Both the position numbers and the translations under genes were made by a program. Of a stretch of DNA of 64,000 nt, positions 5,345 to 50,959 are shown in pieces. The notes beneath the pieces are model-generated. The model worked only from the letters and a program-made list of their open reading frames with translations, was not told the origin of the DNA and ran no database searches. Origin of the DNA: Paramoeba atlantica. Lineage: Eukaryota; Protista; Discosea. The DNA is taken from positions 124,001 through 188,000 of the forward strand of contig CDRNVI010000099.1 in assembly GCA_977017575.1 (NCBI GenBank), written 5' to 3'. Each line of letters begins with the position of its first letter. The stretch's first letter is position 1.

Positions 5345-5467
5345 CGGGAAACGCAAAATATCAGATGACACGTATCTCTGCGAGAGCTCTCGAATGCGGT
5401 GTTACTTTCCAAAATTGGACGATTTATACGAATTTTTCTCCCCCCCACCTTTTTGTGCCACCCCCTG
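5345..5467. mobile_element. solo/truncated Tc1-family terminal inverted repeat
   Basis: Ends CCCCCTG|TA and carries CTCTGCGAGAGCTCTCGAATGCG, shared with the TIRs at 9503-10277 and 14088-15640; same subfamily as 49195-49287. Confidence 0.75.
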
Positions 5468-7746: not shown

Positions 7747-8029
7747 TTACATAATGAAACAACCCCCACGCCTTTCTGTGTCAGATTTGATTTTCGTGTC
7801 CCTAATACACAAGGAGCGAGTCCCTACTACAACGCCGCGCGGCAGTGTATTCGTGTTATATGTTCCTCGTAGGTTGACATTGTGATGTAAAAAAAGCTCG
7901 TGGATGCCGCACGGAAGATGCTCAAAGTGTAAAGCCAGTTGAGAGTCATTCCAAGAAAAACTCATGTGAGTCAAGGATCTGGGCATCTCTATGAAATCCA
8001 AGGTTCCTGAAAACGTGTTGAAAGCCATA
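7747..8029 (-). pseudogene. 3' half of LRR gene split by retrotransposon copy A
   Basis: MAFNTFSGTLDF..LHFEHLPCGIHELFL..IRDTKIKS, collinear with the paralogue at 36530-37156; joins 16851..17227 as RLN|MAFN. Confidence 0.85.
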
Positions 8030-9502
8030 TATATGTTATCATGTAGAAAATATTCTACAGAGATTAGACGGTGAATATGGGAGTTCCATATTACGCGCAC
8101 AAAACGCGTTGAAATCACCTGACAGTCAGCGACTCATTCCTCAGAACTAACCTCCATCCACTGTTTGTTCTCGCGGTGCTGGAAAATTATGAAACTTCCC
8201 CGAAGAGCGCTAGTCGTCATATTTCGGCGACACACTGCAACCGCTTCTTCATTTCCCATGAAGAGAGAGTTGAGCGTTCGGGCCGACATATGCAGTTTGC
8301 CTCTCGCTCCCACCTCGAAGACGAGTGGGAATGTGGTAGGATGGTCGAGTTTTCTAGAGTGATATAAACTCGTGTACTTTTCTATTTTGCGCTCGTGCGC
8401 GAACTCAAAGTTCTCCTCCCAAGGGCAGGTAAGTTCTATAATGTATTCTTCTCCGTTAGATAGTTTCACCCATCCGTCAGGACGTAGCTCAGTATCAAGG
8501 TTCGTGAGCCACGCGGTGGTGGAGCGGAAGTGGGGGAGATCGAAGTGACATTGACTAGTGGAGGAGAATCGTTGTACGGAGTTCGCTAATGCCTGTAGTA
8601 CCATGTTATGCCGCAGGGCATACCTCCCTTGTTCGAGTGATTTCCTACAACCAGATAGAATATGCCGCGTAGTTTGTGTCTCGGTGTCACAGATGGGACA
8701 TTTATCGCTCGCATGTGTCAATACGCCCCACCTACGAAGAGACGCCCTGGTTGGGAGCGGCGTCTCGGTAAGCACTGAGGATGTGAACCGCGAAAGTGAT
8801 TCACTCTTAAGGCTACATAGGGCGGCGGCGAAGTCTCTCGCAAGGTCTGCTTCCGTTGCGATTCTGAACCATCGTCCTGCTACGGCAGTACGCCGTTGGA
8901 CGGCTTCCGTGAGGTGTCGCTCGTATTCGCTTCCAAGGAGTCTTCGGACGTTACTATGGCTTGTACTGTGCATATCCGTCGGCGGGCGAATGTATCCTGC
9001 TCTCCTTTTGTTCGCTTCTCGACTGATGCGCTCACATAAAGCGTGCTGGACCTCGGGATCACGCGATTTATCCATTTGTTCCATTGTCTCCACAGTGGAA
9101 AGAAGCCAAAGTTTTGACAGACTCATGAGATTCCAGCCATGCTCTGAATAGAGCAGCTCACTAGGTGCTGATTTCGCTACGTTTAACCATTTCCGAATTT
9201 CGCGTGTGGGGCATCGCTGTAGCCGAAGTACGTAATTGAAGGTAAGGCATGAGTTCACGACGAAGGAATACCGCAGACGAGAGATGATACCGTTATTGTA
9301 TATCCACAGGCGCGCGGGAAGGTCATGTGCGCTGGAAGATATATTACGCAACCAGGCTCGCAGACGGGTTCGTAGTTTTAGAAAGAGTGTCTTGCCTTGT
9401 TGAGCACCGGGTGCGAGCGTCATGCCTAAAAATGTGCTACCATTATCACATATGTGTGGGATAGGTGACGTGCCGATCATGATCTGTGGTCGGCGTGTCA
9501 TA

Positions 9503-10277
9503 CAGGGGTGCAAATCAGATGCTGGGGGGGTCTAAAATTAACAATGTTTGCGCAATTTTGGAAAATGATAGCGCATTCGAGAGCTCTCGCAGAGATCTAT
9601 GTATTTGGATAGGCGGTTTCCCGGGGTGTAAGGGGGTGGTCAACTGAGGAGAAGCCCAAAAAGGTCAAAATGCAAAAAATGAAGGAAAATTTTTGTACGT
9701 TCAATAATTACAACTTTCACCTTTTTGTTTCTACTACTATGTCGAAACGCCGTGGCATGCTGTTTAAAGTGTTTATGAGCATGTCATGACCATCTGTTTT
9801 AATGTAATCAACCGCCGTTTCAATAGAACATCCCCGGTTTCCTCAAATCGCTTAACCCACAACTTAACATGCTGTCGTGGACGCCTTGTCTTTGGCAAGT
9901 GGCACTGTAGGAGTTTGTATTCTCGTAATCTTTAACCAGAAGCATCCTGTGTGAATATTTTGTGTGCCCCGGGGGTTCATGTGATCTATCAGATAAGCCT
10001 TTACTGTTTTGCTTAGAGCGGGATTGCTTTTGCGGCATAATAGTGAGCTGAAAAACAAAAAAACACGGAAAAAACTGCAAAAATTGAAAAATCTGCAAAT
10101 TTTAGGGGGGTAAAAAAGCTTTAAAAAAAATATTTTTTTCGAATTTGTTTTCTTTTAACGTGATAATAGCGCCAAAACATAGATCTCTGCGAGAGCTCTC
10201 GAATGCGCTATTATTTTCCAAAATTGTGCAAACATTGCTAATTTTAGACCCCCCCCAGCATCTGATTTGCACCCCTG
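9503..10277 (-). mobile_element. internally deleted Tc1-like element inserted in the RT of copy A
   Basis: About 100-bp TIRs starting CAGGGGTG, TA duplication (9501-02, 10278-79); removing it restores the DSGYMTRR frame. Retains a transposase N-terminus (MPQK..PGH..RMLLV) homologous to 14296..15423. Confidence 0.9.
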
Positions 10278-12473
10278 TATATCCAGAGTCTTGCGTCATC
10301 GCCATGTGTTGCAGCCGGCATTTTTTCACGTTTAGTTTCATCCCAATATCGCTTAGAACTTTGACGAGTGCGTTTGTAGCATTCTGCATTTCCTGGGGGG
10401 TATTTGTCAGAGTAGTGAGGTCATCTGCGAAGGCTTTTAGAAAAATTTCTTTCGCATTCCACGTGATCCTGTGTTCGGGGCAACTTGAACTGACAAAACG
10501 CAGAATTAGCTCAATCGCCAAGTTGAATAAAATAGGCGAAAGCGTATCTCCCTGCAATACGCCACGACCTATCTCAATAGACTTCGTGAGTCCCTCTGCA
10601 CATTTGTACATTTGTATAGACGCTCGTTCGTACAACGCTTTGATGTAGTTAATGAGGATCGGTGAGACGCGCGCCCATTTTAAGGCCTGAAATAAAATTG
10701 TATGGGGTATGGATCCAAACGCGTTTTTGATATCAAACTGGGCAAGCACGTATTGCCTTTTGTGGCGCCGCTGGTGCTCGAGGATCTCGCAAAGAACCTG
10801 GGTGTGCTTAACTGTCCCATTCATATGCGGCAAGAAGCCTTTTTGTATTGTTGTATCCAGGGCATTGGAATCCAGGGAATGCTGAAGGATACGGTGACTT
10901 AGGATTGAGTGGAAAAGCTTCCCAATGCAGCTAGTCAAGCTTATCGGCCGCTAGTTTTCCATACTTGAGGTGGGGCCCCCTTTGTGGATAAGTCGAGTGA
11001 CCGCAGTTTTCCAGGTTGGAGGGCATACACCAAATTTTAGGACATCATTAAACACCTGTGCCATGTGAGTAAAGAGAGGGGCGCAGCGCTTTAGCAGCGC
11101 GTTCGATACAGTGTCCGAGCCTGGGGCAGCCCCAGAGCGTTTGGATGCGACGGCTGCTGGGATCATGTCTGAGTCAATATCTGACCATTGCATCTCATCA
11201 AGGGGATTTGGTTTCGTAAATTCTGCGGGAGGAATCTTGTGTATCTCTTCTGGTCTAGACATTGAGCCCACAAAGAATCTTTCAACCTCCTGTACAGGAA
11301 CTGTAGGGTAGGACGTCCCAGTTTCTGAGGTAGATGGGTCGACGCGATCTAAGCATTCGCGCGCGGCTGTCCAGGGATTTCGCTGGAATCGCGTAAGAGC
11401 CCACCGTCGACCGATTTCTTTCCTCTGCATACTGGATTCTTCCATGTACTGTTTTAGTGCCTTTTCGGCTTCCTTTATTTCCCCTCGTTGCTTGTTTCTC
11501 GCAGGACCCACCAACCATGAACGTTAACGCACGTTTAAGTTGTCGAACGTGTTGACTGAGTACTTTCACTGTGCGTTCAATGGCTAAGGGTCGTGATTTT
11601 CTTCTGGCTCTGCCAGTTCTGGTCCGTATAAGAAAGCCGTGCGTCGGATCGTTTTCCCGTGCGGCCTCGAATGCAGTTACAGCGAGGATTGCTGAGAGTA
11701 TTTCAGCTTGCGACAGGGCGTCCTCTTTGTTTCGCGCCAGGTGGATGTACGAGTTGCAGCGCTCCTCGATCTTCGCAATAATACTCTCCCACTGTTCCTC
11801 TGTGAAACGGACTAGAACGCGACCTCCATTTATTGTGCGGAATGTTTCGAGTAGGTTCTGCAGTACAGGGAGAGGTCGGGTAGCCGGGATTTGCCGGACA
11901 CGAGGGATGCGCTGCAATATCGTGTGTTCGCAGTTTCCTTCTGGTGGGGGAGGTAAAGGTAAAGGCAGAGGCGTGGGATTTGTTGCGGACTGCACAAGGG
12001 GTAAAGAAGGTGAGGAGCGGCGTACAGAAGGAGAATCATGTTGCGGGGCGTGGACAAGTGGTGCATTCCGCCAAGGCTCAGTATTGAACTCGAGCGATTC
12101 GACGGGTTGGTGTGAACTGGGGGGTAGGTTGATGCGCGTGGAGGGGGCGGTAGTGAAGCTTTTGCGGCGCGTTCCGCATCACCCATTGCAGGGCACAGTA
12201 TATTTCTCGTGGTCCAGCATGTGGCAGAGTACGCTACTTCAGCGACTTTGAGGAGAACTCCTTTCTGGAAGCATTGATGTTTACATGTTGCCTTGTCCTT
12301 ACATTTATGAGCGCAGTTGCGACGAGGCGCTGTTGGGGCAGGGGTGTTGTTGTCATTGCTGGTGTGCAGGTCCGGAGAGGTACGGACGGGTTCGCGGAGT
12401 ACAACCTCCGTGCTAGATTGTATGACACCATTTTTGCAACATCGATGCTTGCACTGAGCTTTGTTGCTACATA

Positions 12474-13180
12474 CAGGGGTGTAAATTTGGATGTGGGGGG
12501 GGTCTAAAATTTGTAAAACTTAGCCAATTTTGGAAAATAATAGCGCATTCGAGAGCTCCCGAACAGGGCTCATGAACGTAACAAGGCCGAACTATGCACA
12601 AGGGGGTATTGCCCCCTAGACAAAGCGCCCCCTAAAGCTATTTGCAACTTTCTAAAACAATAGCAAATATCGAAAAAAAAAATTATAATTGCTATTATCG
12701 TCGATTAATCCCAATCACAATACAGCATCGCTTTCGAAAGCTCTTCATGGCATTTTCATGGGCCTTGAAACGCTGCTTCGATCGCAATGATCAAATCTGC
12801 ACTATTCCGAGGGGCTCAACCATTTTTGGAGTCGCCCACTATGGAACATGATTTTTTAGCGCGAAAAAGATTGTGTTGTTTCGTAATCAGCAACAAGAAC
12901 CATGCACCAGCTTGCTTTTACGTGCCCAGGCGAAGAATAAACCCTTTCGTAGTCTTTGTGTTCGGGTGATGGCCCACAACCCCATCTTTGTAGCATTAAT
13001 CAGGGGAGAAATCAGAAAAACTGTGAAAAATGCAAAATTTTCCCTCCCAAAAAACTAAGTTTTTTTACGTGCACTCGAAATTCTAATTAACGCAGATGCC
13101 GTACATGCACGTTCATGAGCCCAGTTCGAGAGCTCTCGAATGCGCTATAATTTTCCAAAATTGGCCAAGTTTTACAAAAT
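12474..13180 (-). mobile_element. deleted Tc1-like element with truncated right TIR
   Basis: TA|CAGGGGTGTAAATTTGG left end; internal pieces homologous to both ends of the 14296 transposase; right TIR breaks off at about 13180. Confidence 0.85.
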
Positions 13181-14087
13181 AAAAACGTTAGCGCACGTTT
13201 AAGTTGTCGAACGTGTTGACTGAGTACTTTCACTGTGCGTTCAATGGCTAATGGTCGTGAGTTTCTTCGGGCTCTGCCAGTTCTGGTCCGTATAAGAAAG
13301 CCGTGCGTCGGATCGTTTTCCCGTGCGGCCTCGAATGCAGTTACAGCGAGGATTGCTGAGAGTATTTCAGCTTGCGACAGGGCGTCCTCTTTGTTTCGCG
13401 CCAGGTGGATATACGAGTTGCAGCGTTCCTCGATCTTCGCAACCATACTCTCCCACTGTTCCTCTGTGAAACGGACTAGAACGCGACCTCCATTTATTGT
13501 GCGGAATGTTTCGAGTAGGTTCTGCAGTTCAGGGAGAGGTCGGGTAGCCGGGACTTGCCGGGCACGAGGGATGCGCTGCAATATCGTGTGTTCGCAGTTT
13601 CCTTCTGGTGGGGGAGGTAAAGGTAAGGGCAGAGGCGTGGGATCTGTTGCGGACTGCACAAGGGGTAAAGAAGGTGAGGAGCGGCGTACAGAAGGGGAAT
13701 CGTGTTGTGGGGCGTGGACAAGTGGTGCATTCCGCCAGGGCTCAGTATTGGACTCGAGCGATTCGAGGGGTTGGTGTGAACTGGGGGGTAGGTTGTTGCG
13801 CGTGGAGGGGGCGGTAGTGAAGCTTTTGCGGCGCGTTCCGCATCACCCATTGCAGGGCACAGTATATTTCTCGTGGTCCAGCATTTGGCAGAGTACGCTA
13901 CTTCAGCGACTTTGAGGAGAACTCCTTTCTGGCAGCATTGATGTTTACATGTTGCCTTGTCCTTACATTTATGAGCGCAGTTGCGACGAGGCGCTGTTGG
14001 GGCAGGGGTGTTGTTGTCATTGCTGGTGTGCAGGTCTGGAGAGGTACGGACGGGTTCGCGGAGTACAACCTCCTTTGTTGCTACATA
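13181..14087 (-). repeat. tandem duplicate of part of retrotransposon A (homologous to about 11520-12473)
   Basis: ORFs 13235..13915 and 11571..12251 are near-identical; the second copy lacks about 50 bp before the Tc1 insertion site. Confidence 0.9.
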
Positions 14088-15640
14088 CAGGGGTGTAAAT
14101 TTGGATGTGGGGGGGGTCTAAATTTTGTAAAACTTGGTCAATTTTGGAAAATAATAGCGCATTCGAGAGCTCTCGAACAGGGCTCATGAACGTAACAAGG
14201 CCGAACTAGGCACAAAGGGGTATTGCCCCCTCGACAAAGAGCCCCCAAACGCTATTTGCAACTTTCTAAAGCACGGGAAAAAATAGAAAAAAAAATTAAT
14301 AATTGCAGTTTCCGCCGTTCTTTTCAATCACAATACGGCATCGCTTACGAAAGCTCTTCATAGCGTTTTCAGAGGCTATAGAATGTGTCGTTTGAAGATC
14401 TTGAAACGCTGCTTCGATCGCAATGAGCAAATCTGTACGATTTCTAGGGGCCAAACCATTTTTGAAATTGTCCATTATGGACCATAAATTTTCAACGGGC
14501 ATGAGATCAGGTGATTTTGCTGGCCAAGGAAGAACAGTAATTCCTGTCTCTTGAAAGCTTGTCCTGGCCAGATTGTGCACCGTACAGTTATCCATTGCAA
14601 TAACGCTAGAACGGTGCCGCTTAAGGTAAGAAATTAACCCTCCACGCTTCTTCATGGCTTCATCAAAAATAGCGCCCGTCACTGTACCTCGGTTTCCTTG
14701 AGAACGAACAGAAGGAAAAACGTGAAGGTGAAACCCATGCTTAAGGCTCGCTGCCATCCAAACCATAACACCATTCCCCCCATGCCATGCATCCAATTCA
14801 CCTTGCTGCTCCTTGGGAGCGTGAGTTTTGCGGCAGAGGTACGTGATGTGCCCCCCACTCTTCCCACAAGTAAATTTTTTTTCATCCATCCAAATGATAT
14901 TGGACAGTTCCGCGTCACTCCACGTTAGCATTTCTTCACAGAAACGTACTCGTTTCTCTTTATGCACTGAGGTAAGTGCAGGGGATTTCCGGACTGTGCG
15001 CAAAACGATGCCATGTGATTTCATGTGGGTCGTCAAAGTTTGACGAGAGCAAGTGAACCCAAGATTTTCCATTAACCGGTGGAGCTCACTCCAGCTCCTG
15101 ATGCCATAGGGTTGATCTCGAACACCCTCGTCTATAGCTTTCAAAGCAGCCTCACGTAGTTCAGGTGTCACAGCGATGTTCGTTGGGGCGTGTTTCTGGT
15201 TCTTGGAGTCTACTTCTCCAGTATCACGATAGCGCTCCACCCAGCGCTTCACAGTAGCTTCATGAACTTGAAAATTGCGTGCGGTTAGGGAAAAAGACTG
15301 TGTTGCTTCGTAATCGGCAACAAGAAGCATGCGCCAGGTTGCTTTTATGTGCCCAGGCGAGGAATAAGCCCTTTCGGAGTGCTTATGTTTCGGAGATCGT
15401 CCACAATCCCGTCGTTGTGGCATGAATAAGGGCAAAAAACAGAAAAATTGTGAAAATTGCAGGATTTCGTCTTCCAAAAAACTAAGTTTTTTTGTGTGCA
15501 TTCGAAAATCTAATTAACACGGATACGGTATATGCACGTTCATGAGCCCTGTTCGAGATCTCTCGAATGCGCTATTATTTTCCAAAAATAGCCAAATTTT
15601 ACAAATTTTAGATCCCCCCACATCCAAATTTACACCCCTG
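14088..15640 (-). mobile_element. apparently intact Tc1-like transposon
   Basis: About 105-bp TIRs (CAGGGGTGTAAATTTGGATG...CATGAACGT), TA TSD at 14086-87 and 15641-42, uninterrupted transposase ORF. Confidence 0.95.
14296..15423 (-). CDS. Tc1/IS630-family transposase (DD32E)
   Basis: MPQRR start at 15423; HTH-like region (LTARNFQVHEATVKRWV); WMDE, MDN and WPAKSPDLMPVE motifs. Confidence 0.9.
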   Translation of the reverse strand: MPQRRDCGRSPKHKHSERAYSSPGHIKATWRMLLVADYEATQSFSLTARNFQVHEATVKRWVERYRDTGEVDSKNQKHAPTNIAVTPELREAALKAIDEGVRDQPYGIRSWSELHRLMENLGFTCSRQTLTTHMKSHGIVLRTVRKSPALTSVHKEKRVRFCEEMLTWSDAELSNIIWMDEKKFTCGKSGGHITYLCRKTHAPKEQQGELDAWHGGNGVMVWMAASLKHGFHLHVFPSVRSQGNRGTVTGAIFDEAMKKRGGLISYLKRHRSSVIAMDNCTVHNLARTSFQETGITVLPWPAKSPDLMPVENLWSIMDNFKNGLAPRNRTDLLIAIEAAFQDLQTTHSIASENAMKSFRKRCRIVIEKNGGNCNY

Positions 15641-16810
15641 TATGCGCCGACAGGGGCGATAATTGACTTCATTGGTTGATGTTTGTGTGTGGTGTGCGGC
15701 GTCATCCATGTATTCTAGTGAGGGCAGATTTGCGGTCGGGAGCTCCGGATCCCTGACCTCTTCGAAGTGTCCGATGTCTGGTGTGGTATGCTGATCGGTG
15801 TCTATGGATAAGTCTGCTGGTAGTGGACTACTTGCTCGAGCTATGGGTGGTTCCACGAGGGGTAGCACTGGTTGAGGACTACTTTGGGCATCTGTAATGG
15901 GGACCCCCACTTTGCAACACTTGTGCAGACAATTTCTTTTGTCGCGGCATGTGTGTTTGCACGGTCTTCTGTGAGAAGTAAGTGAGGGTTCCATAGGGGC
16001 AACGACCTCCGGAGAGGGAAGAGACACGCTAGGCGGAAGAGATCCCTCGTGTCGTACTTTGCAACATGCGTGGAGACACGATGTTTTGTCCCGGCATTTA
16101 TGAGCGCATGGGGCACGTGGTTCGGAAGCGTGTTTTGAGGCATATGATGGCGGTGACACCTTGTAAGAGTCATCTCGGATCCTATAGGGTGCGCCGTAGG
16201 TGATCTCTGGGTGACCCCGTAGTAGTTCAATGGGTTGTATTTTTCGAGTTACGTGTGTGATTTGGAATTTTCGTAATCCTGGGATGTCACTACCACATAG
16301 TTTCTTTGTGACCGCTTTACCGAGCGCGTTCGAAGAGGAGTACACTGCGTTAAGCTGCATGAACGAATCCATGTAGGCGGAACTCCACCTGGCGTGACAA
16401 AACGTGCGACTTCGGTTTCCCGTTTCTTGGTATTTTAGGTGTTCACATGCGTTGTTTTCAATGACATCTTGAATTGTACACGATGTGATTATCAGACCAT
16501 CACTTCTTTTGCTTTCCGACTTCAAGGATTTGCCGATCGAGACTTCAACCATGTGGACACTCGAGAAGAACTCTCGTTCTGTGAGGGCAATGGCTGCGGC
16601 ATGCGTGTCTGGGAAATATGACCATGTGACGCTGTCTGAGGGGCGGATTTTGACGGGCATCGCTCGACTTTGGATGAAGTGAAAGCTCTGGGGATGTCGC
16701 TGCGCGCTGACAGGTCCTCCAGGGGGGCCGTCGTGTGCGATGGGAGCCGGTGAGGTGACATTGGAGGCCATGCTTCGGAAGATAAAGTTAGTACAAAATT
16801 GAAAATAATT

Positions 16811-16836
16811 CAACAAGTTACAGAAACTGTATCTTT
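16811..16836 (-). other. spliced-leader-like relic at 5' end of copy A
   Basis: AAAGATACAGTTTCTGTAACTTGTTG; contains most of the ACAGTTTCTGTAC core conserved in kinetoplastid/diplonemid SL exons. Confidence 0.8.
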
Positions 16837-19952: not shown

Positions 19953-22900
19953 ATGTGTTTATTCAATGCAGAATCATGTTTAGATCTGCAGAGGTAAATT
20001 TCTACCTATGCTACGGTCGCATACGACGACCCCGCATAGGCTGTTTTACTAGCCTAGCCGCCCCCTTTCCAGTCGGGTGATTCCCGGTTTAGCCAAATAA
20101 CAAAGCTACTACGAATTGCTTCGCGTATGGCTTCAAGTTGGCATTCCGTGGACAGCCCTTTGTCACTCCCAAAAAGGCGGGCTACCTGCCGAAGAGAGGA
20201 AGCCGGCAATCCTCTTACACCCACCTCCATACACAGCAGATGTGTGTTCGGGTGATCCATCCTGCGGCGATGCAATATATTCTGATATTTTTCCGTTTTG
20301 CGGCAGTGTGCCTCCGCGATGTTGTCTTCCCAGGGTACGGTCAGTTCAACGATAAATTCAGTTCCATCGTGAAGCCTGACCAGGCCATCCGGACGCAGAG
20401 TGGTTTCTAGGGCTGCCCACCAACTTGGGAGGTTACGGAGGCCCTCGAGGTCGAATGAGGCCCAGGAGGTGTTGGGGGAGCCGACGATCGCGTTCGCAAG
20501 GACGCTCAACACTCTGTCATGTCGATACGTGTAGCGTCCTTGGTCTAAGGATGTCCTGCAACCTGAGAGCAGGTGCCTTAAGGTTTCGGGTGCTGAGTTG
20601 CAGATACGGCAAGACATACTATTTGCACCATTCTTCCCCCATGTTCTGAGCATGGTCCGGGTAGGAAGTGGGGCTTGGACCATCACATGTGTAGCGAATC
20701 TGCTCAGTGAAGTGCTCCTAAGGCCGTTAATGGCAGCTGCAAAATCTTTCGCCTGATCTTCCTCCGTGTTCGTGTCCCACCACTGTATGGCAACCGTGGT
20801 GCGGCGTCGCAGAGCGTTAATCATACGCTCCTCGTTCAGGTCAATGAGAGTTTTCCTGGCGCGAGATCGGTCGTTCAAGCAGTGCGTTATGTGAGTTGCG
20901 GGCCGTATTTGTCCTTTCAAGCGTCTCTCCTCTTCTTCCCGTATTTTGTTCCGAAGCACAGCTGCGGCAGCCGGATCTTTGGATTTCTTTAACTGGCACA
21001 TAAGGTCTGCAGTACATTCATGCCACAGTTGCGACAGGCTCCTCAGTCCCCAGCCGCGCGATGAGTAAATTGCTTCGGGACTAGAGCCACGCGCCACGTT
21101 AATCCAACGCCGCAGGAAGTTGGTACAGAGTTTCTGGAGTCGGAGGACAAAGTTCATAGTGATGCACGGGTGGATCGTAAGCGAGAAGCGCAAGCGGGAG
21201 ATAATGGCATGCTGATATATCCATAGTCGCGAAGGGAGGTCGTGGGCGCTCTTATCGATATTTCTGAGCCATGAATTAATGAGAGGACGTAGCTTCATGA
21301 ACAGCGCACGGGACTGTTGTGCTCCAGGGGCGATGGTCATGCCCAGAAAGGTGCTACCTGCATCACAGATTTGGGGAATGGGAATGTGATTGATCAGAAT
21401 TTGTGGACGGCGTGTCATGTAACCTGGGTGTTCATCGTCCGGTCGCACGGCCATGCATTGTACCCTACTCTTTTTCACGTTTATAGATAAACCTATTTTG
21501 CGGAGGATTGAGTATAGGGCTCCTAGTGCGACTCCTTCGGGTTGCTGGTGAGGACCGTGAGATCGTCAGCGTAGGCCTTTATAAAGCATTTCGCATTGCC
21601 TGGCAGATCGAGTCCGTACGCGGGAAAGTTAAGTGTCATATAACGCAGTACTACTTCCATGACGATAAGGAATATAGACGGGGAGAGGGTGTCGCCTTGG
21701 AGTACCCCACGTTGCACAGGAATTGTAGAGGAGAGACCTTCATAACACTTTATTTGCGTAGACGCTCCGTTATATAAACTACTGATGTACCCGAGGAGAG
21801 TCGGGGAGATCTTGGCCCATTGCATCGCCTCAAATATAACATTGTGTGGGACTGAACCGAATGCGTTGGATAGATCCAGTTGGGCTAAGCAGTATTGGAG
21901 CTTGTTCTTTCTGTAGTGCTGCAAGATTGCATCCAGCGTCTGAGTGTGTTCCAGTGTCCCGTTGATGGCCGGTAGGAAACCCTTTTGGATTGATGGATCA
22001 ATTACTGCTGCCTCGACCAGATGGCGGTTTATTTTGCGACTTATGATCGAATGGAGAAGCTTAGCTAGAACACTGATGAGACTGATGGGGCGCCAGTTTT
22101 GGGGTTGATCGTGAGCTCCATTTTTATGAATTAGGCGGGTAACAGAGCATTTCCAGGAAGGTGGGCAAGTGCGATACTTGAGCAACGCGTTGAAGACTGT
22201 AGCGATGTGTGAGTGTACGCTGTGACACCGTTTTAGGATGGTATACGTGATGGTGTCTTGACCTGGGGCACTACTATTCCTTTTCGAGATTAGAGCGTCG
22301 GATATTTCGGTCGGGGTCAGCTCTTCCCATGACATGTCGACAAGAGGACGGGTCCCAAGCGAGTCAGACGGAGGAATGTGGTATTCCTCTGAAGGAGCAG
22401 AAAGTGTATCACCAAAGTGCTTTTCCACGCTGTGCACATCGCATGTAGGATAGGAGGCTGGGGCTTCAAGACCGATAGGTTTGTCCAATGTTTCGCTAGC
22501 GGCGGTCCATGGGTTTCTGTTAAAGCGTTTCAGTGCCCGGCGTTGTTCGAGTGTTTGCCGCTGTGCGGTGGCCTCCGCATGATAAACCCTTTCACCTTTT
22601 TTGGTTTCCTTGATCGTTCGTTTTAAGGCGTTCCTGTCTGCCTTTCCATGTGTATAGCGTAGTCTTGTCTGCAGTTCTTTTAGGTGCCGGGAGAAGGACG
22701 AGGCTATTTTTTCGCTTTCCAAGGGTCTGCATCGGGTCTTTGCGTGACCTTTCTTTGTGCGGATTAAAAAGCCTTTCGTGGGATTCACGTCGCGAGCAAC
22801 CTCGTAGGTAGAGACAGATAGTATGGAGCTCAGGAGTTCGGCGTTCCTAACGGCGGAATCTATGTCTTGTTCAGGAGTGAGTAATGCACTACACCTTTTG

Positions 22901-25576
22901 AGAGCCTTGGTCTCAACGTCGTGCCACTGTGCGTCCGTTAAGTTGATACATATCTTTCCCCCTTGGATGTACCTGGCTGTTCGGAGTAGGTAATCGAGAT
23001 CCTGTTCTTTATACTCCTGCAGGTCTGGTGGAACCGCCGAGCGAGGTACTTTGGATTCCTGGGCAGAGCTGGTCTCGGCGGCAGTGGAACCTGCAGTTGG
23101 AGGAGCAGCGGGACCGAAGACTTTACAGCAACGATGAGCACACCCGAGTTTGTCGCGGCAGGTGTGGCGGCAGGGTTGTGCAAAGGATTGCAAAGAGGGT
23201 ACACGACTGGGTGGGTCTGCTATGCGATATGCTGGAAGCTCCGGAATAGCTTCTAAGACCGGCGGAGTTTCGTCGATGGGTGTGTGTCGATGTAGGGTTA
23301 TCACATGATCTGCAAGCCCGGGAATTTCGGAGCCGTTTAGTCTCTTAAGAACGGCTTTACTGAGAGTACCCGGAGAGGAATAGTAATCTGAAAGTTTTAG
23401 GGCTGCATCCTGGTACAGAGATACCCAACTGGAGTGGCGCGAAGACTTGTCCGGGCTTCCGACTTTGTGAATTGTAATGAAATCGCACGCCCCATGGTCC
23501 ATCAGTTCTTCTACGGAACATCCTCTTACTATGATGTCGTGCGTGGGGTTGCCAGAGTTCAGCGCCTTCGAAATGGCTGCCTGCGCTCCCTGCAGGGAGC
23601 TAATCCTGCTGCGTGTGATTTGACTTTCGCAGGCAGCTCGTACGTCCGGAAAATATAACCATTCTTGGGCACTTGCTAGACGAAGTTTCAGAGGCTTTGA
23701 TCGGGATTGTATAAAATGTAGGCATTGTTTCCCTTTCTCTGTCGAGCGACGTCTTTCTACAGGGACCCCCGAATTCCCAGAAGGCACGTCGTGAGGGACC
23801 TTCTCGAATACCCATTCCGGAACTTCGTCGTCCGCAGTGCAGAGAGGGAACGGTGGTTCTGTCAAGAGTCCTTCTGAGTCGTCGGTATGGTGGGGTGACT
23901 TTATACGATTAATAAGTAGTTTCTCTACGCCGCGGCGTGTGGGACTAGGCGTGAACGAGACGTTCCAGGACTCCGGCACTATCGAAAGATTCTGTGGCGG
24001 CGATAAAGGGGCAGGGAGGTACGGGACTTTCTCTGCTTTGGAGTTGTCGGAAGTGTCCACCCCTGCGTCGTGCTCGGGCGTGCTGCTGGGATGGTCGCGA
24101 TATGGTTCATCAGTTATCCGGTCTGGGGGGTGCTTTTCGGTATCAGAGGAAGAGATACGTGCGGGTGACGATGTTGTGATGCCAGGGGTAAGCCCTCTTT
24201 TGCAGCAAAGGTGGCCACACGTGGTTTTGTCCTTACAGGGATGTTTACATGGTAGATTGTATGGGTTCTGAGGCTCTGGTTCGGGCTGTCGAGCGCTGAG
24301 GCGCAATGTCGGTCCTTCCTGCAGCTTTTCTATAGCGAATTCGGGAGGTTCTCGCTTGGGAGATAGTTGGGACCCTCGGTTTACGGTCTTGGGAGTCATC
24401 TTTCTGAGAGGCGGTGGTTTCGCTCGTGCTTCCGGGGGAGGGATGCCAAGGAGGCCTTTACATAATTCATACGCAAGATTGATAGCTGTTGAGGAGATAG
24501 TATGTTGTTTTCCTTCCGGAGGAGAAGAAGGGGATTTCCGAAAGGTGGGCACCTTACTTGCTTCACGCTGATCAGCTCTGTTGGCATGCGTTGTAGCAGG
24601 GTTGTCGCTGTTTGATCTTGCGATTCCTGGGGCAATCAATTTTCTCTTCGCCGACATTTCTCCCTCGACGTGTTTCCTTGAGCGTTCGTAGTGGTTGGAG
24701 CCCTCGCTTGTGGATCTGCCGCTGGGTGAAAACACTTCCGTGTTCGAGGAGTTCTGCGCAGTTTGGGGTTTGCCCGCACATTGAAATATGGGCTTGGTCA
24801 AGTGGCGCAGTACTTTCACCATAAAGCCCCCAGAGTCTCCTGCCAGATTTTGACTCCCATTGTCGCGCGTACTGCTTTGTGGATCTAGTCTAGGTGCACT
24901 ACCGGCGCTCGTACAAGTGGTGTGGAGGTGACGTTTACAACAGGGGTGCCCGCAGTTCGCCTTATCCTTGCAGATATGTTTGCACGGGGCGATAGGTTCA
25001 GGTACATCCTTTACTACTTCAGATGATGGGGCTTCAGAGGACATTGTGTTTGTTTCCGTCCTCCTCGTTACATCGGTAACAGTATTCCCTTGGGATACAT
25101 GTGTGGTACTATCTTCGGGAACACAGGTAGGAAGAAGATGTCGTTTACAACATGGGTGGCCGCACAGACTCTTGTCTTTGCAGGGATGCTTGCATTGTGA
25201 AATGTTAAGGGGCTGAGTGGACGGCGGATTCGGCGCAGTCTTGCAGCAGGGATGGCCGCATTTTTTTTTTGCTCCTTACAAGTATGTTTACATCGCCGGG
25301 TCGTATTTATTGCGGTTTCCTTCTTTTCAGTGTTTGTTTTCAGTGAACCTCCCATAGGAGCTTTGGGGCTGACTCGGTAGGAGTCTGCATGTTGAGCTGC
25401 ATGTTCCTTGGCCTCGCGTTCAGCACCTGTCAGAGAGGTGGCGGATCGGCTAGTTACGTTGCCTAGTCTCTTATGAGAGTCCTGCAACGCCTGTGAGATT
25501 TCCCCACTTCTGGCATATGGCGAGGTCATGAAGGGTCGTAAACGTAGGGGAAAATAAAGACAACAAGGTACAGAAA
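19953..25576 (-). mobile_element. RLE-type non-LTR retrotransposon copy C (second subfamily, full length, two frameshifts)
   Basis: Partial SL relic 25561-76; ATG at 25529; five CxHxC..CxHxCCK fingers; RT (WRPISL, QGDTLSP, YADD); CRIC..H..C, RH, RPDG..VELTVPWE. Frameshifts at about 25265 (A-run) and about 21520. Confidence 0.9.
25561..25576 (-). other. partial SL-like relic at 5' end of copy C
   Basis: TTTCTGTACCTTGTTG, about 30 nt upstream of the element ATG; identical to the 3' 16 nt of the relic at 33918. Confidence 0.7.
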
Positions 25577-25642
25577 TGTGGTATAAAAAAACCAGGTACA
25601 TCACGAAGATCGAGACCTCCCGTAAACTTGTTACAGGAAATA
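25577..25642 (-). pseudogene. LRR fragment stranded between copies B and C
   Basis: Encodes ISCNKFTGGLDLRDVP; continues the LRR frame broken at 30397 (VIN|ISCN). Confidence 0.75.
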
Positions 25643-28600
25643 TATTGCATCATACAGGTAATCCTGCAGAGATTTATGTGGTGAAAACGCGCACAAAACG
25701 CGTTTTAGTCACCTGTTTATATCCAGCGTCACCAAGAACGTTCTCCTCCATCCAATTTTTGTCATTGCGGTTTTGATATACTATGAAGCTCCCTCTCAGA
25801 GCCTTCACGGTCATATTGCGCCGGCACTCAGCCACCAGCTCATCATTACCCATAAATAGAGAGTTCAGAGTTCGACCAGCACTGCTTATTTTTCCTCTCG
25901 CTCCGACTTCGAAAACGAGTAGAAAAGTACTCGGGTTTGTGAGCTTGCGGGAATAGTAGAGATTTGTGTACTTGGCAGTTTTTCGTTCGTGTGCGTAGAC
26001 AAAATTTTCCTCCCAGGGGCACGTCAATTCTATAATATACTCCTCCCCGTTGGACAGTTTCACCCACCCATCCGGTCGCAGCTCGGTGTCGAGTTCCGTG
26101 AGCCACGGAGGGGTAGAGCGAAAGTGAGGGAGGTCAAAGTGATATAGACTGGTCCCTTGGAATTTCTGCACAGAGTTTGCGAGGGCTTGTAGCACCATGT
26201 TATGTCGCAGAGTATATCGTCCTTGCTCGAGTGCTTTTCTACACTCGGAGAGAATATGTCGCGCAGTTTGCGTTTCAGTATCGCAGATGGGACACTTGTC
26301 GCTTGTTTGTGTCGATACGCCCCATTTGCGGAGAGACACTCTAGTGGGGAGTGGCGTTTCTGTGAGTACGGAAGCCGTAAATCGTGATAGCGATTCGCTT
26401 TTGAGATTACATAGGGCGGCAGCGAAGTCCCTCGCGAGGTCTGCTTCCGTCGCTACGCGGAACCATCTTCCCGCAACTGAAGTGCGCCTTTGCACGGTTT
26501 CCGAAAGATGCCTCTCATATTCACTGTCGGGAAGTCGTCGTACGTTATTGTGAGTTGAACCGAGTATGTCAGTCGGCGGACGAATGTACCACGCTTTTCT
26601 CTTGTTTTCTTCTCTCCTGATGCGTTCGCGCAGGGCGTGCTGGACATCGGGATCGCGTGATTTCTCCATTTGTTCCGCGGCGCTCGCGGTTGAAAGAAGC
26701 CATAGTTTGGATAAGCTCACGAGGTTCCAACCATGCTCGGAATACAACAGTTCGCTTGTCGCGGATTTTGCTACATTTAACCATTTTCTGATTTCATTTG
26801 TAGCGCATCGCTGGAGGCGCAGAACGTGGTTAAAAGTCAGACATGAATTGACAACAAAAGAGTAGCGAAGGCGGGAGATAATACCATTATTGTATATCCA
26901 TAGTCGGGCGGGTAGGTCGTGGGCGCTGGAAGATATGTTGCGTAACCAGGTACGGAGTCGATTGCGTAGCTTTAGGAACAGAATTTTACCATGCTGGGCA
27001 CCAGATGCGAGAGTCATACCCAGGAATGTGCTACCATTATCGCATATTTGAGGAATAGGTGTTGCGTCAATCATTATCTGCGGTCGTCTTGTCATGTAGC
27101 CTGAGTCTTGAGTCATTGCCATGTGTTGAATCCGACATTTCTTTGCGTTCAATTTCATTCCGATATCGCCTAGAACTTTGACCAGTACGTTCGTGGCAAT
27201 TTGCATTTCCTTTGGTGTGTTCGTGAGTATACTGAGGTCGTCAGCAAAGGCCTTCAGAATGGTTTCCTTTCCATCCCAAGTGATTCCGTACTGTCGGCAA
27301 CTTGAACGGATGAAGCGAAGAATCAATTCCATTGCCAAGTTGAATAAGATCGGCGACAGTGTATCTCCTTGTAATACTCCACGGCCGATCTCGATCGACT
27401 TCGTAAGGCCTTCAGCACACTTGATTTGAATAGATGCTCCTTTGTACAGCGCGCTGATATAGTTAATTAGAATTGGGGAGACACGGGCCCATTTTAGGGA
27501 TTGCAACAGTACTGCGTGGGGGATAGATCCGAAAGCGTTCTTGATATCGAACTGTGCCAGTAAGTATTGCCGTTTGTGACGTCGTTGGTGTTCAAGGAGC
27601 TCGCATAAGACTTGTGTATGCTCGACGGTCCCATTCATGTGTGGTAGAAATCCTTTTTGTACTGATGTATCGAGCGCATGAGAATCCAGGGAATGTTGAA
27701 GGATTCGGTGGCTCAGCATTGAATGGAAAAGTTTCCCTATGCAACTAGTTAAGCTTATCGGTCGCCAATTCTCCATAGTTGATGTAGGACCTCCTTTGTG
27801 TATGAGGCGAGTTACGGCAGATTTCCAGGTGGGGGGGCAAATCCCGAATTTAAGGATATCATTGAATACTTGAGCGATGTGGACAAAGATAGGGCTACAA
27901 CGCTTGAGCAGAGCGTTAGATACAGTGTCTGATCCAGGAGCAGCGCCCGAGCGCTTGGAAGATACAGCAGATGCTATCATTTCGGCGTCAATATCCGACC
28001 ATGGCATGTCGATGTCAGGCCGTGGTCCCAAGAACTCGGCGGGGGGTATGCTGTGATTCTCTTCAGGTTTGTAGATTTGATTCAGGTCTGTAGATTGGCA
28101 TCCTCCACGTACAACTTCAACGCTTTCTCTGCTTCCTTAATTTCTCCTCGCTGCTTGTTTCTCGCGGCCCCTTCATGAAGGTAAGTGCACGTTTGAGTTG
28201 ACGAATATGTGTGCGAAGCCTCTTCGTGGTACGTTCCATGGCCAAGGGCCGTGAGTTCCTTCTGGCTCTGCCAGCTCTGGTTCGCAGGAGAAAGCCGTGT
28301 GACGGGTCGCTCTCCCGTGCGGCTTCAAAGACGGTTACGGCGAGGATCGCGGATAATGTTTTAGCTTGAGACAGGGCATCCTCATCGTTTCGCGCTGGGT
28401 GCACGTACAAGTTGCAACGTTCCTCAATTTTCGCAATAACATTGCCCCACTGTTCCTCTGTAAAACGTACCAGAACTCGTCCTCCCGTTATTGTGTCAAA
28501 TGTTTCGAGAAGATTCTGCAGGTCAGGAATGGGCTGAATGGTTGGGGCTGGGGCGTGCTGGGCTCGAGGGATCCTCTGCAGTATCGTGCGTCTGCGATTT

Positions 28601-30396
28601 ACTTCCGGTGGGGGAGGTAAAGGTAAAGGCAAAGGCGCGAGTTCTGCTACGGATTCCATACGTGGTACAGAAGGTGAGGAATCCGGTTGCGTCTGGTGGG
28701 AAATGTCGTAGAGGGCTGGACAGTGGACTCGTGCGGGGCAGGGAGTTGGTGCGAACTGGTAGGCGGGGTGCCACGACTGGGGCGGGAGGTTCCGAAGCTT
28801 GTGAAGAAGCTGTAGCGCGTTCGGCATCACCAAGCGCAGGGAATAGAATATTTTTCGCCGTCCAGCTTATGGTAGAGTATGCGATTTCGCCAGCTTTGAG
28901 GAGAACTCCTTTTTGACAACATGAATGCTTACATTTAGTTTTGTCTTTACATTTATGTGCGCAATTACGGCGAGGGCCTGATTCAGGGTGGATATTGCCA
29001 TCTCTACTAACATGAGCTTCCGGGGAAGTGCGTGTATGAGAGAGCTCGTGGTTTACAGCCTGCGTACCGCTCAAGTTTCCTGTCTTGGATGGCCAGCTAG
29101 GATGATTCTGTGATGATATTATGCTAGCATCGGCAGGAGATGTCCTCGTAAACAAATTCCTAAATGACCATATTCGATTCTGACTGTTTTCTTCGATGAT
29201 CATGACCCCTGTCTTGCAACAATGGTGTTTGCACTGAGTTTTATTGCTGCATATGTGCCGACACGGGCGATAGTTGGCCGTGTTTGCTGATATTACGGCG
29301 GACGACGGTGGATTACCGGTTGGCAGTTCCTCATACTGGGCCTCTTCGCTCGGTATGGCATCTGTCGAGACTTGCGGATCGGTTTCTATCGATGTGGCTA
29401 CTGTCGGACTATGTGACCGTGTTAGTGGTGACTCCCCGAGGTGCCGTTCTGGTCGAGGATTATCAGTAGCACCCGTGATGAGGACTCCTATTTTGCAGCA
29501 CTGGTGCAAACAATTTGTCTTGTCGCGGCACGTATGCTTACAGGGCCTTCTGTCGGGAGCTAGTGAACTGTCTATAGCCACGGCTTCCGAAGAGGGAAGA
29601 GGGACGCTAGGACGCACAGACCATTCGGGTTTCACTTTTCAACATACGTGAAGGCATGCTGCTTTGTCCCGGCATTTATGGGCACAAGGGATACTTGGTT
29701 TAGTGGGCGGTAGTTTTGACACCTTGACGGGAGCATCACGGATTCTATATGGCGCGTCGTATGTGACCTCCGGGCAACGTTGGAGTTGTTCAGTGGGTTG
29801 GGCCTTACGGGTCACGTGTGATATGCGGAATCGTCGTAAGCCTGGCACGTCACCGCCGCGCAATTTCTTTGTGACGGCTTTGCCAAGCGCGTTCGAGGAG
29901 GAGTATTCTGTGTCAAGCTGCATGTCGGGGTCTGTATAAGCAGAGCTCCAGCTCGTGTGATGAAATGTGCGACTAAGGTTTCCAATTTCATGGTACTTAA
30001 CGTACTCGCATGCGTCGTTCTCGATGACATCTTGAGTGGTACACGTTTGTTCTATCAGACCATCGCTCCTTTTGCTTCCCGACTTCAGGGTTTTTCCGAG
30101 GGAAGCTTCTGCTGTGTGCGTGCTTGAGAAAAACTCTCGTTCGGTAAGGGTGATGGCTGCGGCGTGCGTGTCGGGAAAATAGGACCATGAAACGCTATCA
30201 GAGGGGCGGATCTTCACTGGCACCGCACGACTTTGGACGAAGTGAAAGTTCTGGGGGTGTCGCTGCGCTCTGACAGGTCCTCGAGGGAGGCCGTCGTGCG
30301 CGTGGGGAGCTGGGGGTGTGACATTGGAGACCATGCTCCGAAAGATAAGTTTAGTACAAAGTTAATAAATCAACAAAGTACAGAAACTGTATCTTT
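25643..30396 (-). mobile_element. RLE-type non-LTR retrotransposon copy B (full length, frameshifted)
   Basis: SL relic 30371-96; ATG at 30334; four zinc fingers in 28523-29680; RT plus RLE ORF 25674..28031; 3' end TATGATGCAATATAT. Confidence 0.92.
30371..30396 (-). other. spliced-leader-like relic at 5' end of copy B
   Basis: AAAGATACAGTTTCTGTACTTTGTTG, 36 nt upstream of the element ATG. Confidence 0.85.
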
Positions 30397-37315: not shown

Positions 37316-40300
37316 CTACGCTTCGTGACGTGAAAGATGCAGAAAAACGCTTTCCAGATTGCACCTGTTCAAACTGTATTCCTGTACCGCAAACTCATGC
37401 TTGCGACACAGAGCCTGCAATCTACGAAATGCGCGCGATAGCAAGAACTCGCCTTCAATCTGAAACCGTATTTGCGTGTCATGTCTCTCACGAAGAATGA
37501 CTTGGCACTGGGGAAATATATCCATCCGGAGTACGTCACAAAGCTGAGGTACGTCATCTGCATCACTCCCCCCACTTTTATTATGTATGCCCTGATCTGC
37601 TAAAACCTTCATTTCTTCTTGGCACGTGGCGTATACTCTCTCTTTTCGTAGCTTTCTCTGAAGCCCGAAACAAAGTTCATACCCGACCGCAAATTTACTT
37701 TTTATATGTGGCAGAGTCCCAAGACAACGCAATGTTCCTTTTGCCAGGATCCCGACGCGGTGACACAACGCCTCGACCTCTTCTAAGTGATGGGTACTTA
37801 GTAACACACAACGAGGGATTAGTTCTTCTCCAGAACGCTCTGTAGAAATTGCTAAGCCTTCTTGATGATTCGAAAACAGGACCTCCTGCTCTATGGGTAC
37901 AGCAATATGAAAAGGATCCGAAGAAGGCAGGTTGTTCAGCTCCTTAATTCTCGCACTTCTGGTGCCCATTTTTTTATGTTCGTTCAATTCGGTATCCATC
38001 AACCTGCTCTCTCTGTCATGATTTCCATAAAGTTGTTGCAAAAGTTGCCAAAACGTCCGCCGTGTTAACGGATCCATTCCCGCGCTGGCCTCATCTAGAA
38101 TTAATACTCGAGGGGAACCCAATAGTGCGATGCCGAGTGCAAGTTTTCGACGATTACCTCCGCTGAGATTCGTCGCGCAAACGTTCAAATAGGAGGAGAG
38201 TTCGAGAAGAGAGACTAAGTATTCGATCTGGGTGGGAATTTGGGAGGGCAGAATGCCTTGCAGTCGTGCGTAAAACTGCAAATGCTCCTTCACGGTTAAT
38301 AACTCGTGTAAACCTTCTAGTTGCGGACAATATCCAAGAACGGGAGATCGGGAACACGACCGCATCACAGTGGTCTCAAAAACGCTCTCGGGAAGCGGAT
38401 GACCACAAATTGTGGCATAACCCGAGCTTGGAGAAAGCGCTCCAGTAAGGATGGAAAGAGTTGTGGTTTTTCCTGCTCCATTGGCGCCGAGAAAACCGAA
38501 GACTTCCCCAGGAGAAACACCAAAGGTAAGGGAGCGAACTGCAGTAGAACTCACGGCATTCGTTGTTTCCGTTTCCAAATGTCTTGTTTCATAAAAAGAA
38601 TGGGTCGGTCGTCTGCGTAGAGAGACCGCAATACGATTCTTGAAAAATGCGACGCACTTCAGCGCATCATGTTTTAGTTTGGATAAAACCCCATTCGAAT
38701 AGGTTTTATTTAGCTTTACAATAGTGATGAGATCCTTGGAGCGCTTCCGAGAAGTCAGAGGGCAAACATCTGGGCGGCTACCCTGATGGCCGCACGCAGC
38801 CATAATTTCCTTTTCTTCCTGAACTACATCGGGATCGGCAGAAATCGTCCCGCTTGTTGTAGGAAACCCAGAGAGGTCCGTATAGCCTCTCGAGAGGACA
38901 GGAATTCGACACATCAACGGCCGCAACAACTTGGCTACCCACCAAGGCGCATCCATGGCAACCGCAATACTCAGAAAAACAACCGACCCCATCATCAGGT
39001 ACGCGACCGGGGCGCCCACACATTCCCACGCCAACGGCGACGTGCTCCCCACCCGTCCCCCCCACCCTTTTTGGCTCCCCTCGTTTCCTCCCCCCCACCC
39101 CAGCCCCCCCTCCCCCCACCTCTCCACCACCCCCCTCTTCGCCCCCCTCCACGCCAGCGCCATCAGCCCCTCCCCTAGACAGAACCCCGGAAACACGCGA
39201 AAGAACCCGCACCCACGTGGCGTACCCCCCGGGGTACGCCACCCGCATCACAAACGACAGCAGCGTGAGCGTGTACCCCCGAGAGCATCGCAAACAGCCG
39301 CACCGCCGCCTGGGCCGTACTCGGGGACCCAAACCCCCGGTGCACCACATACACCCCCGCGGTGCTGCTCATGCCGAACCCCCCGACCAACGCCCCCGTC
39401 CCCAGGAGGGTCGCCCACTCCCCGACGTACTCGTCCCGTCCGAAATGGGCAAAGACGGATAGCGACATTAATAGAGAGAATAGAAAAAGGGAGAGGTCGA
39501 AGAGAGAGTGGGCGAACCAGCGGGTCGCGCTGTGGAGTCCCGCGAGGGCGTGGAGGTGGGGGGCGCGGGCGGTTCGCTCGGCGACGTGGTAGCCGGCGAA
39601 GACCCCGGGGATGAGGGAGAAGGGGAGGAGGAGGAGGGGGGCGAGTACGAGGGCGCGGGCCGCTGTGTCCGGGACCGCGGGGTCGGGGGAGATCGGGGGG
39701 GAGGGGAGGGGGGGGGAGAGGGGGGTGAGGTGGAGGGGAGGGGGGAGGGGGGGGATTTCCGGGTTGGGTTGGGGAAAAGAGGGTGGTTGTCAAGGGGGGT
39801 GGATGGGGGTTGTTTGTTGGATTTTGGGGGTCTGGGGTTTTTGTTTGGATTGGGGTCGGATGGGTCGGCTCACTTTGGTTGTTGTGATCCCCGGTATTCG
39901 GTTTGATTTTGTTTTCCTCCGTTGGAGTGTGGTCTCCTTGGTTTGGATTTCGGTCTCTTTCCGTTCGATTTTGGTGATCCCCGGTTTTCGTTTTGATTTT
40001 TTTTTCCTTCGTTTGATTTTGGTTTCTTTCCGTTCGATTTCGGTGATCAACGGTTTTACTTTTGATTTTGTTTTCCTCCGTTTGGTAATCCCCGGTTTTC
40101 GTTTTTAAAGGGCTAAAGTCAATAGGAGGTTTTGTGGAGGATGGATAAGAAGAAAAAGGAGAGGATAAAACATTTGTCGCATGGGCTTCACTCCCCATGG
40201 CGTGTTGTACGTAAGCACGAATTTGTGCCACGTGGAGAGCACGAAGGGTTTCGGGCAGGGCATGCGGGGCTGAAGCGTTGTGCCAAAGGATGTAGAGGGG

Positions 40301-50670: not shown

Positions 50671-50959
50671 TGATTTTATCACTCCCCATTCCGTTCCGAA
50701 TCCCTGTAACAAACTTTTAGAGAACACGAAAAGTTTGATACTGTAGACATTACCACGGGCTCAGAGGGTGATGATCCGGACTGGGATCCAGATGACGATA
50801 TATCATGCTATCCGGGTACCGCACCGACGACAGGGACTCTAGCGAAGACGAAACGCCTCTTTTCACGGGGTGGACTCACGAAACCTCTCATACACTGGAG
50901 GTTTATGAGGTGTATGAGGAGGTGTACGATGAGTAAGGAAGAAGTACATGTGCAAAGTG

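Follow-up and report, generated by a model that had tools for sequence, protein, structure and literature searches.

Why would a retrotransposon carry an array of zinc fingers that look like the finger of the Mer3/HFM1 meiotic helicases, and what would such fingers do in front of a reverse transcriptase (RT)? The question was raised by a preliminary description of positions 15643-16772 of a 64,000-nt stretch of DNA (contig CDRNVI010000099.1, 124001-188000), here called the window, which belongs to an assembly of 45.7 Mb in 248 contigs. The window is eukaryotic DNA, and the genome carrying the elements is kinetoplastid-like. We read the interval as the N-terminal part of a dead, site-specific retrotransposon with a restriction-like endonuclease (RLE), in which the fingers and a second domain, referred to below as domain X, would together form a DNA-targeting front end. 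We give this reading a probability of about 0.6.

The finger motif is real, and chance is excluded as its source. A six-frame scan of the window finds 16 fingers of the CxHxCx5CxHxCC type, eight of them perfect and eight near matches to C.H.C.DK..C.H.CCK, all in reading frames of the elements described below. In the whole genome, the exact DNA pattern for the second half of the finger (K..C.H.CCK) has 425 matches versus 0 for the reversed pattern. A genome profile search with the finger yielded 488 candidates, 150 of which were scored, all with E < 1e-7, and the finger profile had no matches in three shuffles of the window. The module is about 25 residues long and strongly basic, reading C-x-H-x-C-x2-K-x2-C-x-H-x-C-C-K. 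Its ligand pattern, C-x-H-x-C-x5-C-x-H-x-C-C with seven invariant Cys/His residues, is unchanged in 18 and in 71 aligned fingers.

Between element families the fingers are 68-76% identical, versus 26-46% for the linkers, which makes the fingers the best-conserved part of the N-terminal region. The linkers are rich in Pro and Ser, as had been described. The dN/dS ratio is 0.26 in the one unsaturated pair, most family pairs being saturated. AlphaFold2 predicts a compact finger core with pLDDT of ~90. Neither the finger nor domain X has a matching Pfam model even at E 10, and profile searches of PDB sequences with each of them gave no matches. A 40-residue model of the finger likewise had no matches with Foldseek and VIA-align, the model being too small for this to imply a new fold.

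The interval belongs to copy A, a dead element at 8027-16836 on the minus strand, as delimited by tblastn and blastn maps and by reading of its ends. All features of copy A named here lie on that strand. The interval (15643-16772) holds an N-terminal ORF fragment, starting at the ATG of the ORF at 15608-16816 and ending where a DNA transposon interrupts the element. Upstream of it is a 5′ head (16811-16836, AAAGATACAGTTTCTGTA...) that resembles the 3′ part of the kinetoplastid spliced leader. Domain X follows at 16235-16672, recognized by alignment and predicted fold as an alpha/beta domain of ~150 residues with the motif W.YFPD..HAAA. Next come finger 1 (16058-16108; motif scan and finger profile) and finger 2 (15911-15961; motif scan and profile, AlphaFold2 core pLDDT ~90), both intact. 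Of finger 3, the first four residues, C-R-R-I, remain at 15641-15652 by the transposon junction; the transposon sits between C-R-R-I and C-S-N-K, and the histidine codon of this finger is already mutated.

The interrupting transposon is of the Tc1/mariner type (14088-15640), as judged from the Pfam domains HTH_Tnp_Tc3_2 and DDE_3, its repeats and its ends. It has ~110-bp inverted repeats, a TA target duplication, and an open transposase ORF of 401 aa at 14296-15501. Beyond it, outside the interval, finger 4 (13929-13979; motif scan and profile) ends in CCQ. The second half of finger 3 and finger 4 are then found duplicated at 12265-12483 (motif, repeat map and profile), within an internal duplication in which 11520-12856 resembles 13184-14492. 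The RT, CCHC motif and RLE region occupies 8158-11499. A MITE of ~780 bp at 9500-10280 in copy A shares the inverted repeats of the Tc1/mariner element, and fragments with the same ~110-bp repeats lie at 12470-12579, 13109-13180 and 5374-5417. The MITE and several fragments share these repeats, which shows past activity of this Tc1/mariner family within the retroelements and next to them.

The earlier account of the interval thus needs some adjustment. It had placed the motif at 15643-16772, where it is indeed present, on the minus strand, but with just two intact fingers (16058-16108 and 15911-15961) and a third that is cut. Its counts of four fingers in subfamilies A, B and D and five in C apply to the families and not to this interval. 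The two strings that it gave as examples come from other copies (29492-29545 and 51070-51123; 24199-24252).

Three other copies lie in the window. Copy B, of a four-finger family, is at 25640-30396 on the minus strand, with fingers at 29636-29686 (containing a stop), 29492-29542, 29213-29263 and 28913-28963, followed by the RT and the CCHC/RLE region. Copy C, of a five-finger family, is at 19955-25579, also on the minus strand and with the same regions after its fingers, which are at ~25240-25290 (broken in an A-run), 25144-25194, 24934-24984, 24199-24249 and 23122-23172; two copies at other places in the genome are ~99% identical to it, and its intact relatives have five fingers. Copy D, at 50959-55161 on the plus strand, is 5′-truncated inside finger 1 and retains a remnant of it plus three fingers, at 51073-51123, 51352-51402 and 51652-51702, the last being degenerate.

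Elsewhere in the genome, intact copies consist of one ORF of 1358-1862 aa that encodes between two and six fingers, and at least five families fall within this range. RVT_1 and zf-RVT were found by Pfam in every intact ORF scanned, RVT_1 with E values of 1e-24 to 1e-33. Both follow the finger arrays. Across the families, the C-terminal 250 residues conserve CCHC (C..C..H..C), RH[DN], RPD, ELT.P.E and K..KY, a set of motifs by which the restriction-like endonuclease of R2-type elements is recognized. The same motifs are also seen in distant relatives from protists and a fish, among them an RT protein of the fish, a UCH-RT protein and a Myb-RT transcript. The carrier of the fingers is, from these motifs, a single-ORF non-LTR retrotransposon with RT, CCHC motif and a predicted RLE of the PD-(D/E)xK type. 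Its closest proteins, ~50% identical, are ENA predictions, and a word-based protein search with the finger region matched one ENA protein. Among RNA sequencing runs, none was found to contain the element. No C2H2 or Myb domain was matched by Pfam in the element ORFs.

The kinship of the fingers with Mer3/HFM1 was examined both ways. In an exhaustive search of 1.84 billion representative proteins, a profile made from 18 element fingers had 152 matches at E ≤ 1e-3, with the exact ligand pattern in all of the 150 listed. When 23 long matches were scanned one by one, 17 had a Sec63 domain, and every one of these is a single-cassette helicase (DEAD, Helicase_C, wHTH, Sec63) or a fragment of one. 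In these 17 the finger comes shortly after the Sec63 domain. Several matches bear such names at NCBI, for example "ATP-dependent DNA helicase MER3" in Blastocladiella and "probable ATP-dependent DNA helicase HFM1" in Lepisosteus and in Oppia; the element profile matches proteins with the name MER3 or HFM1 at E values of 1e-5 to 1e-3. The reciprocal profile was made only from 19 fingers of the 17 helicases, which had first been found with the element profile, and it recovered all of the fingers in the window, with 17 matches at domain E values of 1e-6 to 2e-12, and nothing else, with none in shuffles.

Beyond the metal ligands, the two sets share [DN]K and CCK.G[VIL]. By sequence, the element fingers are the same module as the Mer3/HFM1 finger, being alike in ligand pattern, flanking residues and two-way profile matches. 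The assignment of the fingers to the Mer3/HFM1 type, for which the preliminary description had proposed an HMM of the finger as the check, therefore holds: the profile does match Mer3/HFM1 helicases, and the helicase profile matches back. In human HFM1, a "zinc finger motif" has been placed at the position after the Sec63 domain, and HFM1 variants associated with infertility map to the finger (PMC8383409). The arrangement differs, as Mer3/HFM1 helicases have one or two fingers shortly after Sec63, whereas the element has two to six before the RT. The DEAD/Helicase_C/Sec63 cassette is absent next to the element fingers, RVT_1 and zf-RVT being the only Pfam domains of the ORFs. The element shares the finger module with Mer3/HFM1 and is not a member of the helicase family.

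Did the element then take its fingers from a host Mer3 gene, as had been suggested? There are seven Sec63 matches in the genome, and one of them, a gene for a single-cassette Sec63 helicase, ranks first for four Mer3/HFM1-type helicases, of which three bear the name MER3 or HFM1. This Mer3 candidate, with DEAD, Helicase_C and Sec63 domains, lies on contig C3 (L008:2178-6740, minus strand) and has an allele on contig C30. When its locus was searched in all frames with both finger profiles, no finger was found. Its low-complexity tail of 570 residues does not have the finger seen in Mer3/HFM1 of fungi and animals. Elsewhere, the module stands beside SNF2, RNase T, RNase H, ubiquitin, OTU, HHH and polymerase-lambda finger domains and CCHC knuckles.

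A recent capture from the host Mer3 gene with later multiplication inside the element would agree with the identity of the module to that of Mer3/HFM1 and with its tandem copies. We consider it very improbable, however, and rejected it, because the host single-cassette Sec63 helicase has no finger in any frame and the module is spread over many unrelated proteins and other RTs, including a different class of retroelement in the same genome and an unrelated metagenomic RT with the module at its C-terminus. In addition, the fingers lie at corresponding positions in divergent families, which makes the arrays old. The module, too, looks old, and it seems to move between proteins.

The other retroelement of this genome is an ORF on contig C13 (L025:3984-6092, minus strand), in which RVT_1 and RNase H are followed by a single Mer3-type finger at the C-terminal end; after it comes a 1312-aa ORF without any Pfam match. 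The metagenomic RT ORF, on a 4.5-kb GC-rich contig (L023, JGI metagenome 3300045502), ends with two Mer3-type fingers. These are of a subtype, E-C-x-H...CCKRHL, that is also seen in numerous short environmental proteins and in a transcript of Cantina marsupialis (P0055).

Domain X is the other constant part of the N-terminal region. It is conserved over ~150 residues in all families and always has a finger directly after it; families differ in whether the other fingers precede or follow this pair. Its AlphaFold2 model has pLDDT values of 76-93 by 10-residue block, mostly >85. Against the PDB, VIA-align matched the model to the DNA-binding part of the homing endonuclease I-HmuI (Z 5.2), the DNA-binding domain of I-TevI (Z 4.1) and DNA-binding sCTP (Z 5.0, rmsd 2.1 over 52 residues). 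In the ESM Atlas, the structure matches are clusters with GIY-YIG or HNH plus NUMOD1/4. In BFVD, most matches are homing endonucleases of the HNH and GIY-YIG kinds or NUMOD proteins, and Foldseek gives these local matches probabilities of up to 1.0. The likeness to NUMOD has modest scores (Z ~5, Foldseek E ~1e-3). No Pfam NUMOD family matched domain X in sequence even at E 10, and a feature search of the ESM Atlas gave no usable match. The reading draws its weight from the agreement of three independent structure libraries, each with a modest score, and by it domain X is probably a NUMOD-like DNA-binding domain.

I-TevI and I-HmuI, whose modules match the predicted fold in the PDB, the ESM Atlas and BFVD, resemble the element in having small DNA-binding modules strung together with a zinc finger (I-TevI has one) and joined to the nuclease of a mobile element. 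They differ from it in that the nuclease of the element is of the PD-(D/E)xK type and lies at the far end of an RT protein, and in that domain X, unlike their NUMOD modules, has no sequence-level match to NUMOD families.

Where the elements land was read from insertion junctions. Eight independent insertions, from at least five families, are in sense orientation right after LPxx[LIV]xx[LIF] of leucine-rich repeat (LRR) genes; they comprise copies A (at 16836) and B (at 30396) of the window and those at L009, L010, L014, L016, L017 and L021. The LRR gene resumes ~7 nt before the Asn codon of LxxLxLxxN. A ninth locus with the same LRR junction as copy A, L015, is a paralogous duplicate of that copy and was left out of the count. 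These insertions mark the element as a site-specific LINE that targets one codon position in a coding repeat. The specificity is not absolute, as two of the three young (~99% identical) C copies are outside LRR sequence, and the target DNA is degenerate.

The preliminary description had named the fingers as a candidate determinant of LRR targeting. The LRR position is the same in families that have anything from two to six fingers, and finger number does not track the target. Since finger number varies while the target stays the same, it is unlikely that the fingers alone encode LRR specificity. The NUMOD-like domain X is, from its predicted fold, at least as good a candidate for targeting as the fingers.

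In the reading that we prefer, the protein order of the intact relatives is a nucleic-acid-binding front end, the RT, the CCHC motif and a PD-(D/E)xK-type endonuclease, where the front end would consist of the NUMOD-like domain X and two to six Mer3/HFM1-type fingers. R2 finds its target through the zinc finger and Myb domain of its N-terminus, and nicking is abolished when these are deleted (PMC10499050). By analogy, the front end of the present elements would stand in for the C2H2 and Myb domains of R2 and keep the protein bound to its target DNA at a set distance from where the endonuclease cuts. The core recognition unit may be domain X with the adjacent finger, a pair that is invariant. 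Additional fingers might then add affinity for DNA or for a branched DNA/RNA intermediate without adding sequence specificity.

The fingers could instead bind RNA, as a gag- or ORF1-like RNA-binding or chaperone module, leaving the choice of target to domain X and the endonuclease. We regard this as rather unlikely. The domains that accompany the module across proteins (RNase T, RNase H and zf-CCHC knuckles, together with RT) would suit RNA binding just as well, the fingers are highly basic, and the target is constant while finger number varies. Yet the fingers sit where R2-type elements keep their DNA-binding domains, one finger is always fused to the NUMOD-like domain, and Mer3/HFM1 is a DNA helicase. 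Less probable still is a protein-protein role, in which the fingers would reuse whichever partner the finger may have in Mer3/HFM1 and recruit host recombination or repair factors to finish integration. Such a role would suit a module common to a meiotic recombination helicase and found also in ubiquitin, OTU and SNF2 contexts, but the Mer3-like protein of the host has no finger, and tandem basic repeats are more typical of nucleic-acid binding.

A front end of this composition sets the elements apart within an otherwise familiar class. They have the same single ORF, RT, CCHC motif and C-terminal PD-(D/E)xK endonuclease as R2, R4, NeSL/Utopia and CRE/SLACS/CZAR, and, like RLE elements such as R2, they insert in one orientation into a repeated target, undergo 5′ truncation and have a nucleic-acid-binding region at the N-terminus (PMC10499050; PMC4640811). 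The N-terminus, unlike that of R2-type elements, is without C2H2 or Myb domains and has Mer3-type fingers and a NUMOD-like domain instead. The target differs as well, being a codon position in protein-coding LRR repeats in place of rDNA, snRNA or spliced-leader genes; CRE/SLACS/CZAR of kinetoplastids insert into spliced-leader RNA genes, and the copies here are in LRR genes. N-terminal C2H2 and/or Myb domains are typical of RLE elements and do not strictly define them.

In the searchable literature, no paper on a Mer3/HFM1 finger in a retrotransposon was found (MER3 also names an unrelated human repeat family). Nothing relevant was found there on NUMOD-like domains in RLE retrotransposons or on LRR-targeting LINEs. 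New here are the predicted NUMOD-like domain in every family, a target common to families with different numbers of fingers, the lack of a finger in the Mer3-like gene of the host, and the state of copy A.

Site-specific RLE retrotransposons are under development as gene-insertion tools, and their N-terminal domains set the landing site. The present elements use a different front end, aimed at a short degenerate coding motif and not at rDNA. They also provide hundreds of naturally varied finger copies in one genome as material for work on the structure and ligand of the finger, to which PDB searches found no homologous solved structure. It is conceivable, although we hold it only tentatively, that the Mer3/HFM1 finger represents a zinc module for DNA or branched DNA intermediates, uncatalogued yet widespread among eukaryotes, which together with a NUMOD domain aims an RT at one codon of a protein-coding repeat. 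If this is true, the varied arrays in this genome would be a direct way to learn the role of the helicase finger.

Both ends of the elements have features of their own. The 5′ ends begin with AAAGATACAGTTTCTGTAC..., resembling the 3′ part of the kinetoplastid spliced leader. This sequence lies at the 5′ end of the element itself; the sites in which the copies sit are LRR genes and not spliced-leader genes. Such heads are seen in the window at 16811-16836, 30375-30396 and ~25560-25579, and elsewhere at L010, L011, L014, L016, L017, L019 and L020, being partly duplicated in L014 and L017. The 3′ ends of different families share the motif AATCTCTGCAG ... CTGYATGAT ... ATATAT, located at ~8027-8075, 25640-25680, 19955-20010 and 55060-55161. 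A short inverted repeat within the motif, CTGCAG / CTGCA, could form a 3′ stem-loop for recognition by the RT. In copy D, the shared 3′ tail is partly duplicated.

Numerous near-identical pairs of loci occur on different contigs (C3/C30, C15/C53, C1/C3 and others), for example Sec63 genes and finger arrays with identical DNA. The 45.7-Mb assembly may include both haplotypes or recent segmental duplications. Within the window, the minus-strand ORF at 39248-44362, of 1704 aa and with ABC_tran and ABC2_membrane domains, is an ordinary host gene for an ABC transporter between the retroelement clusters.
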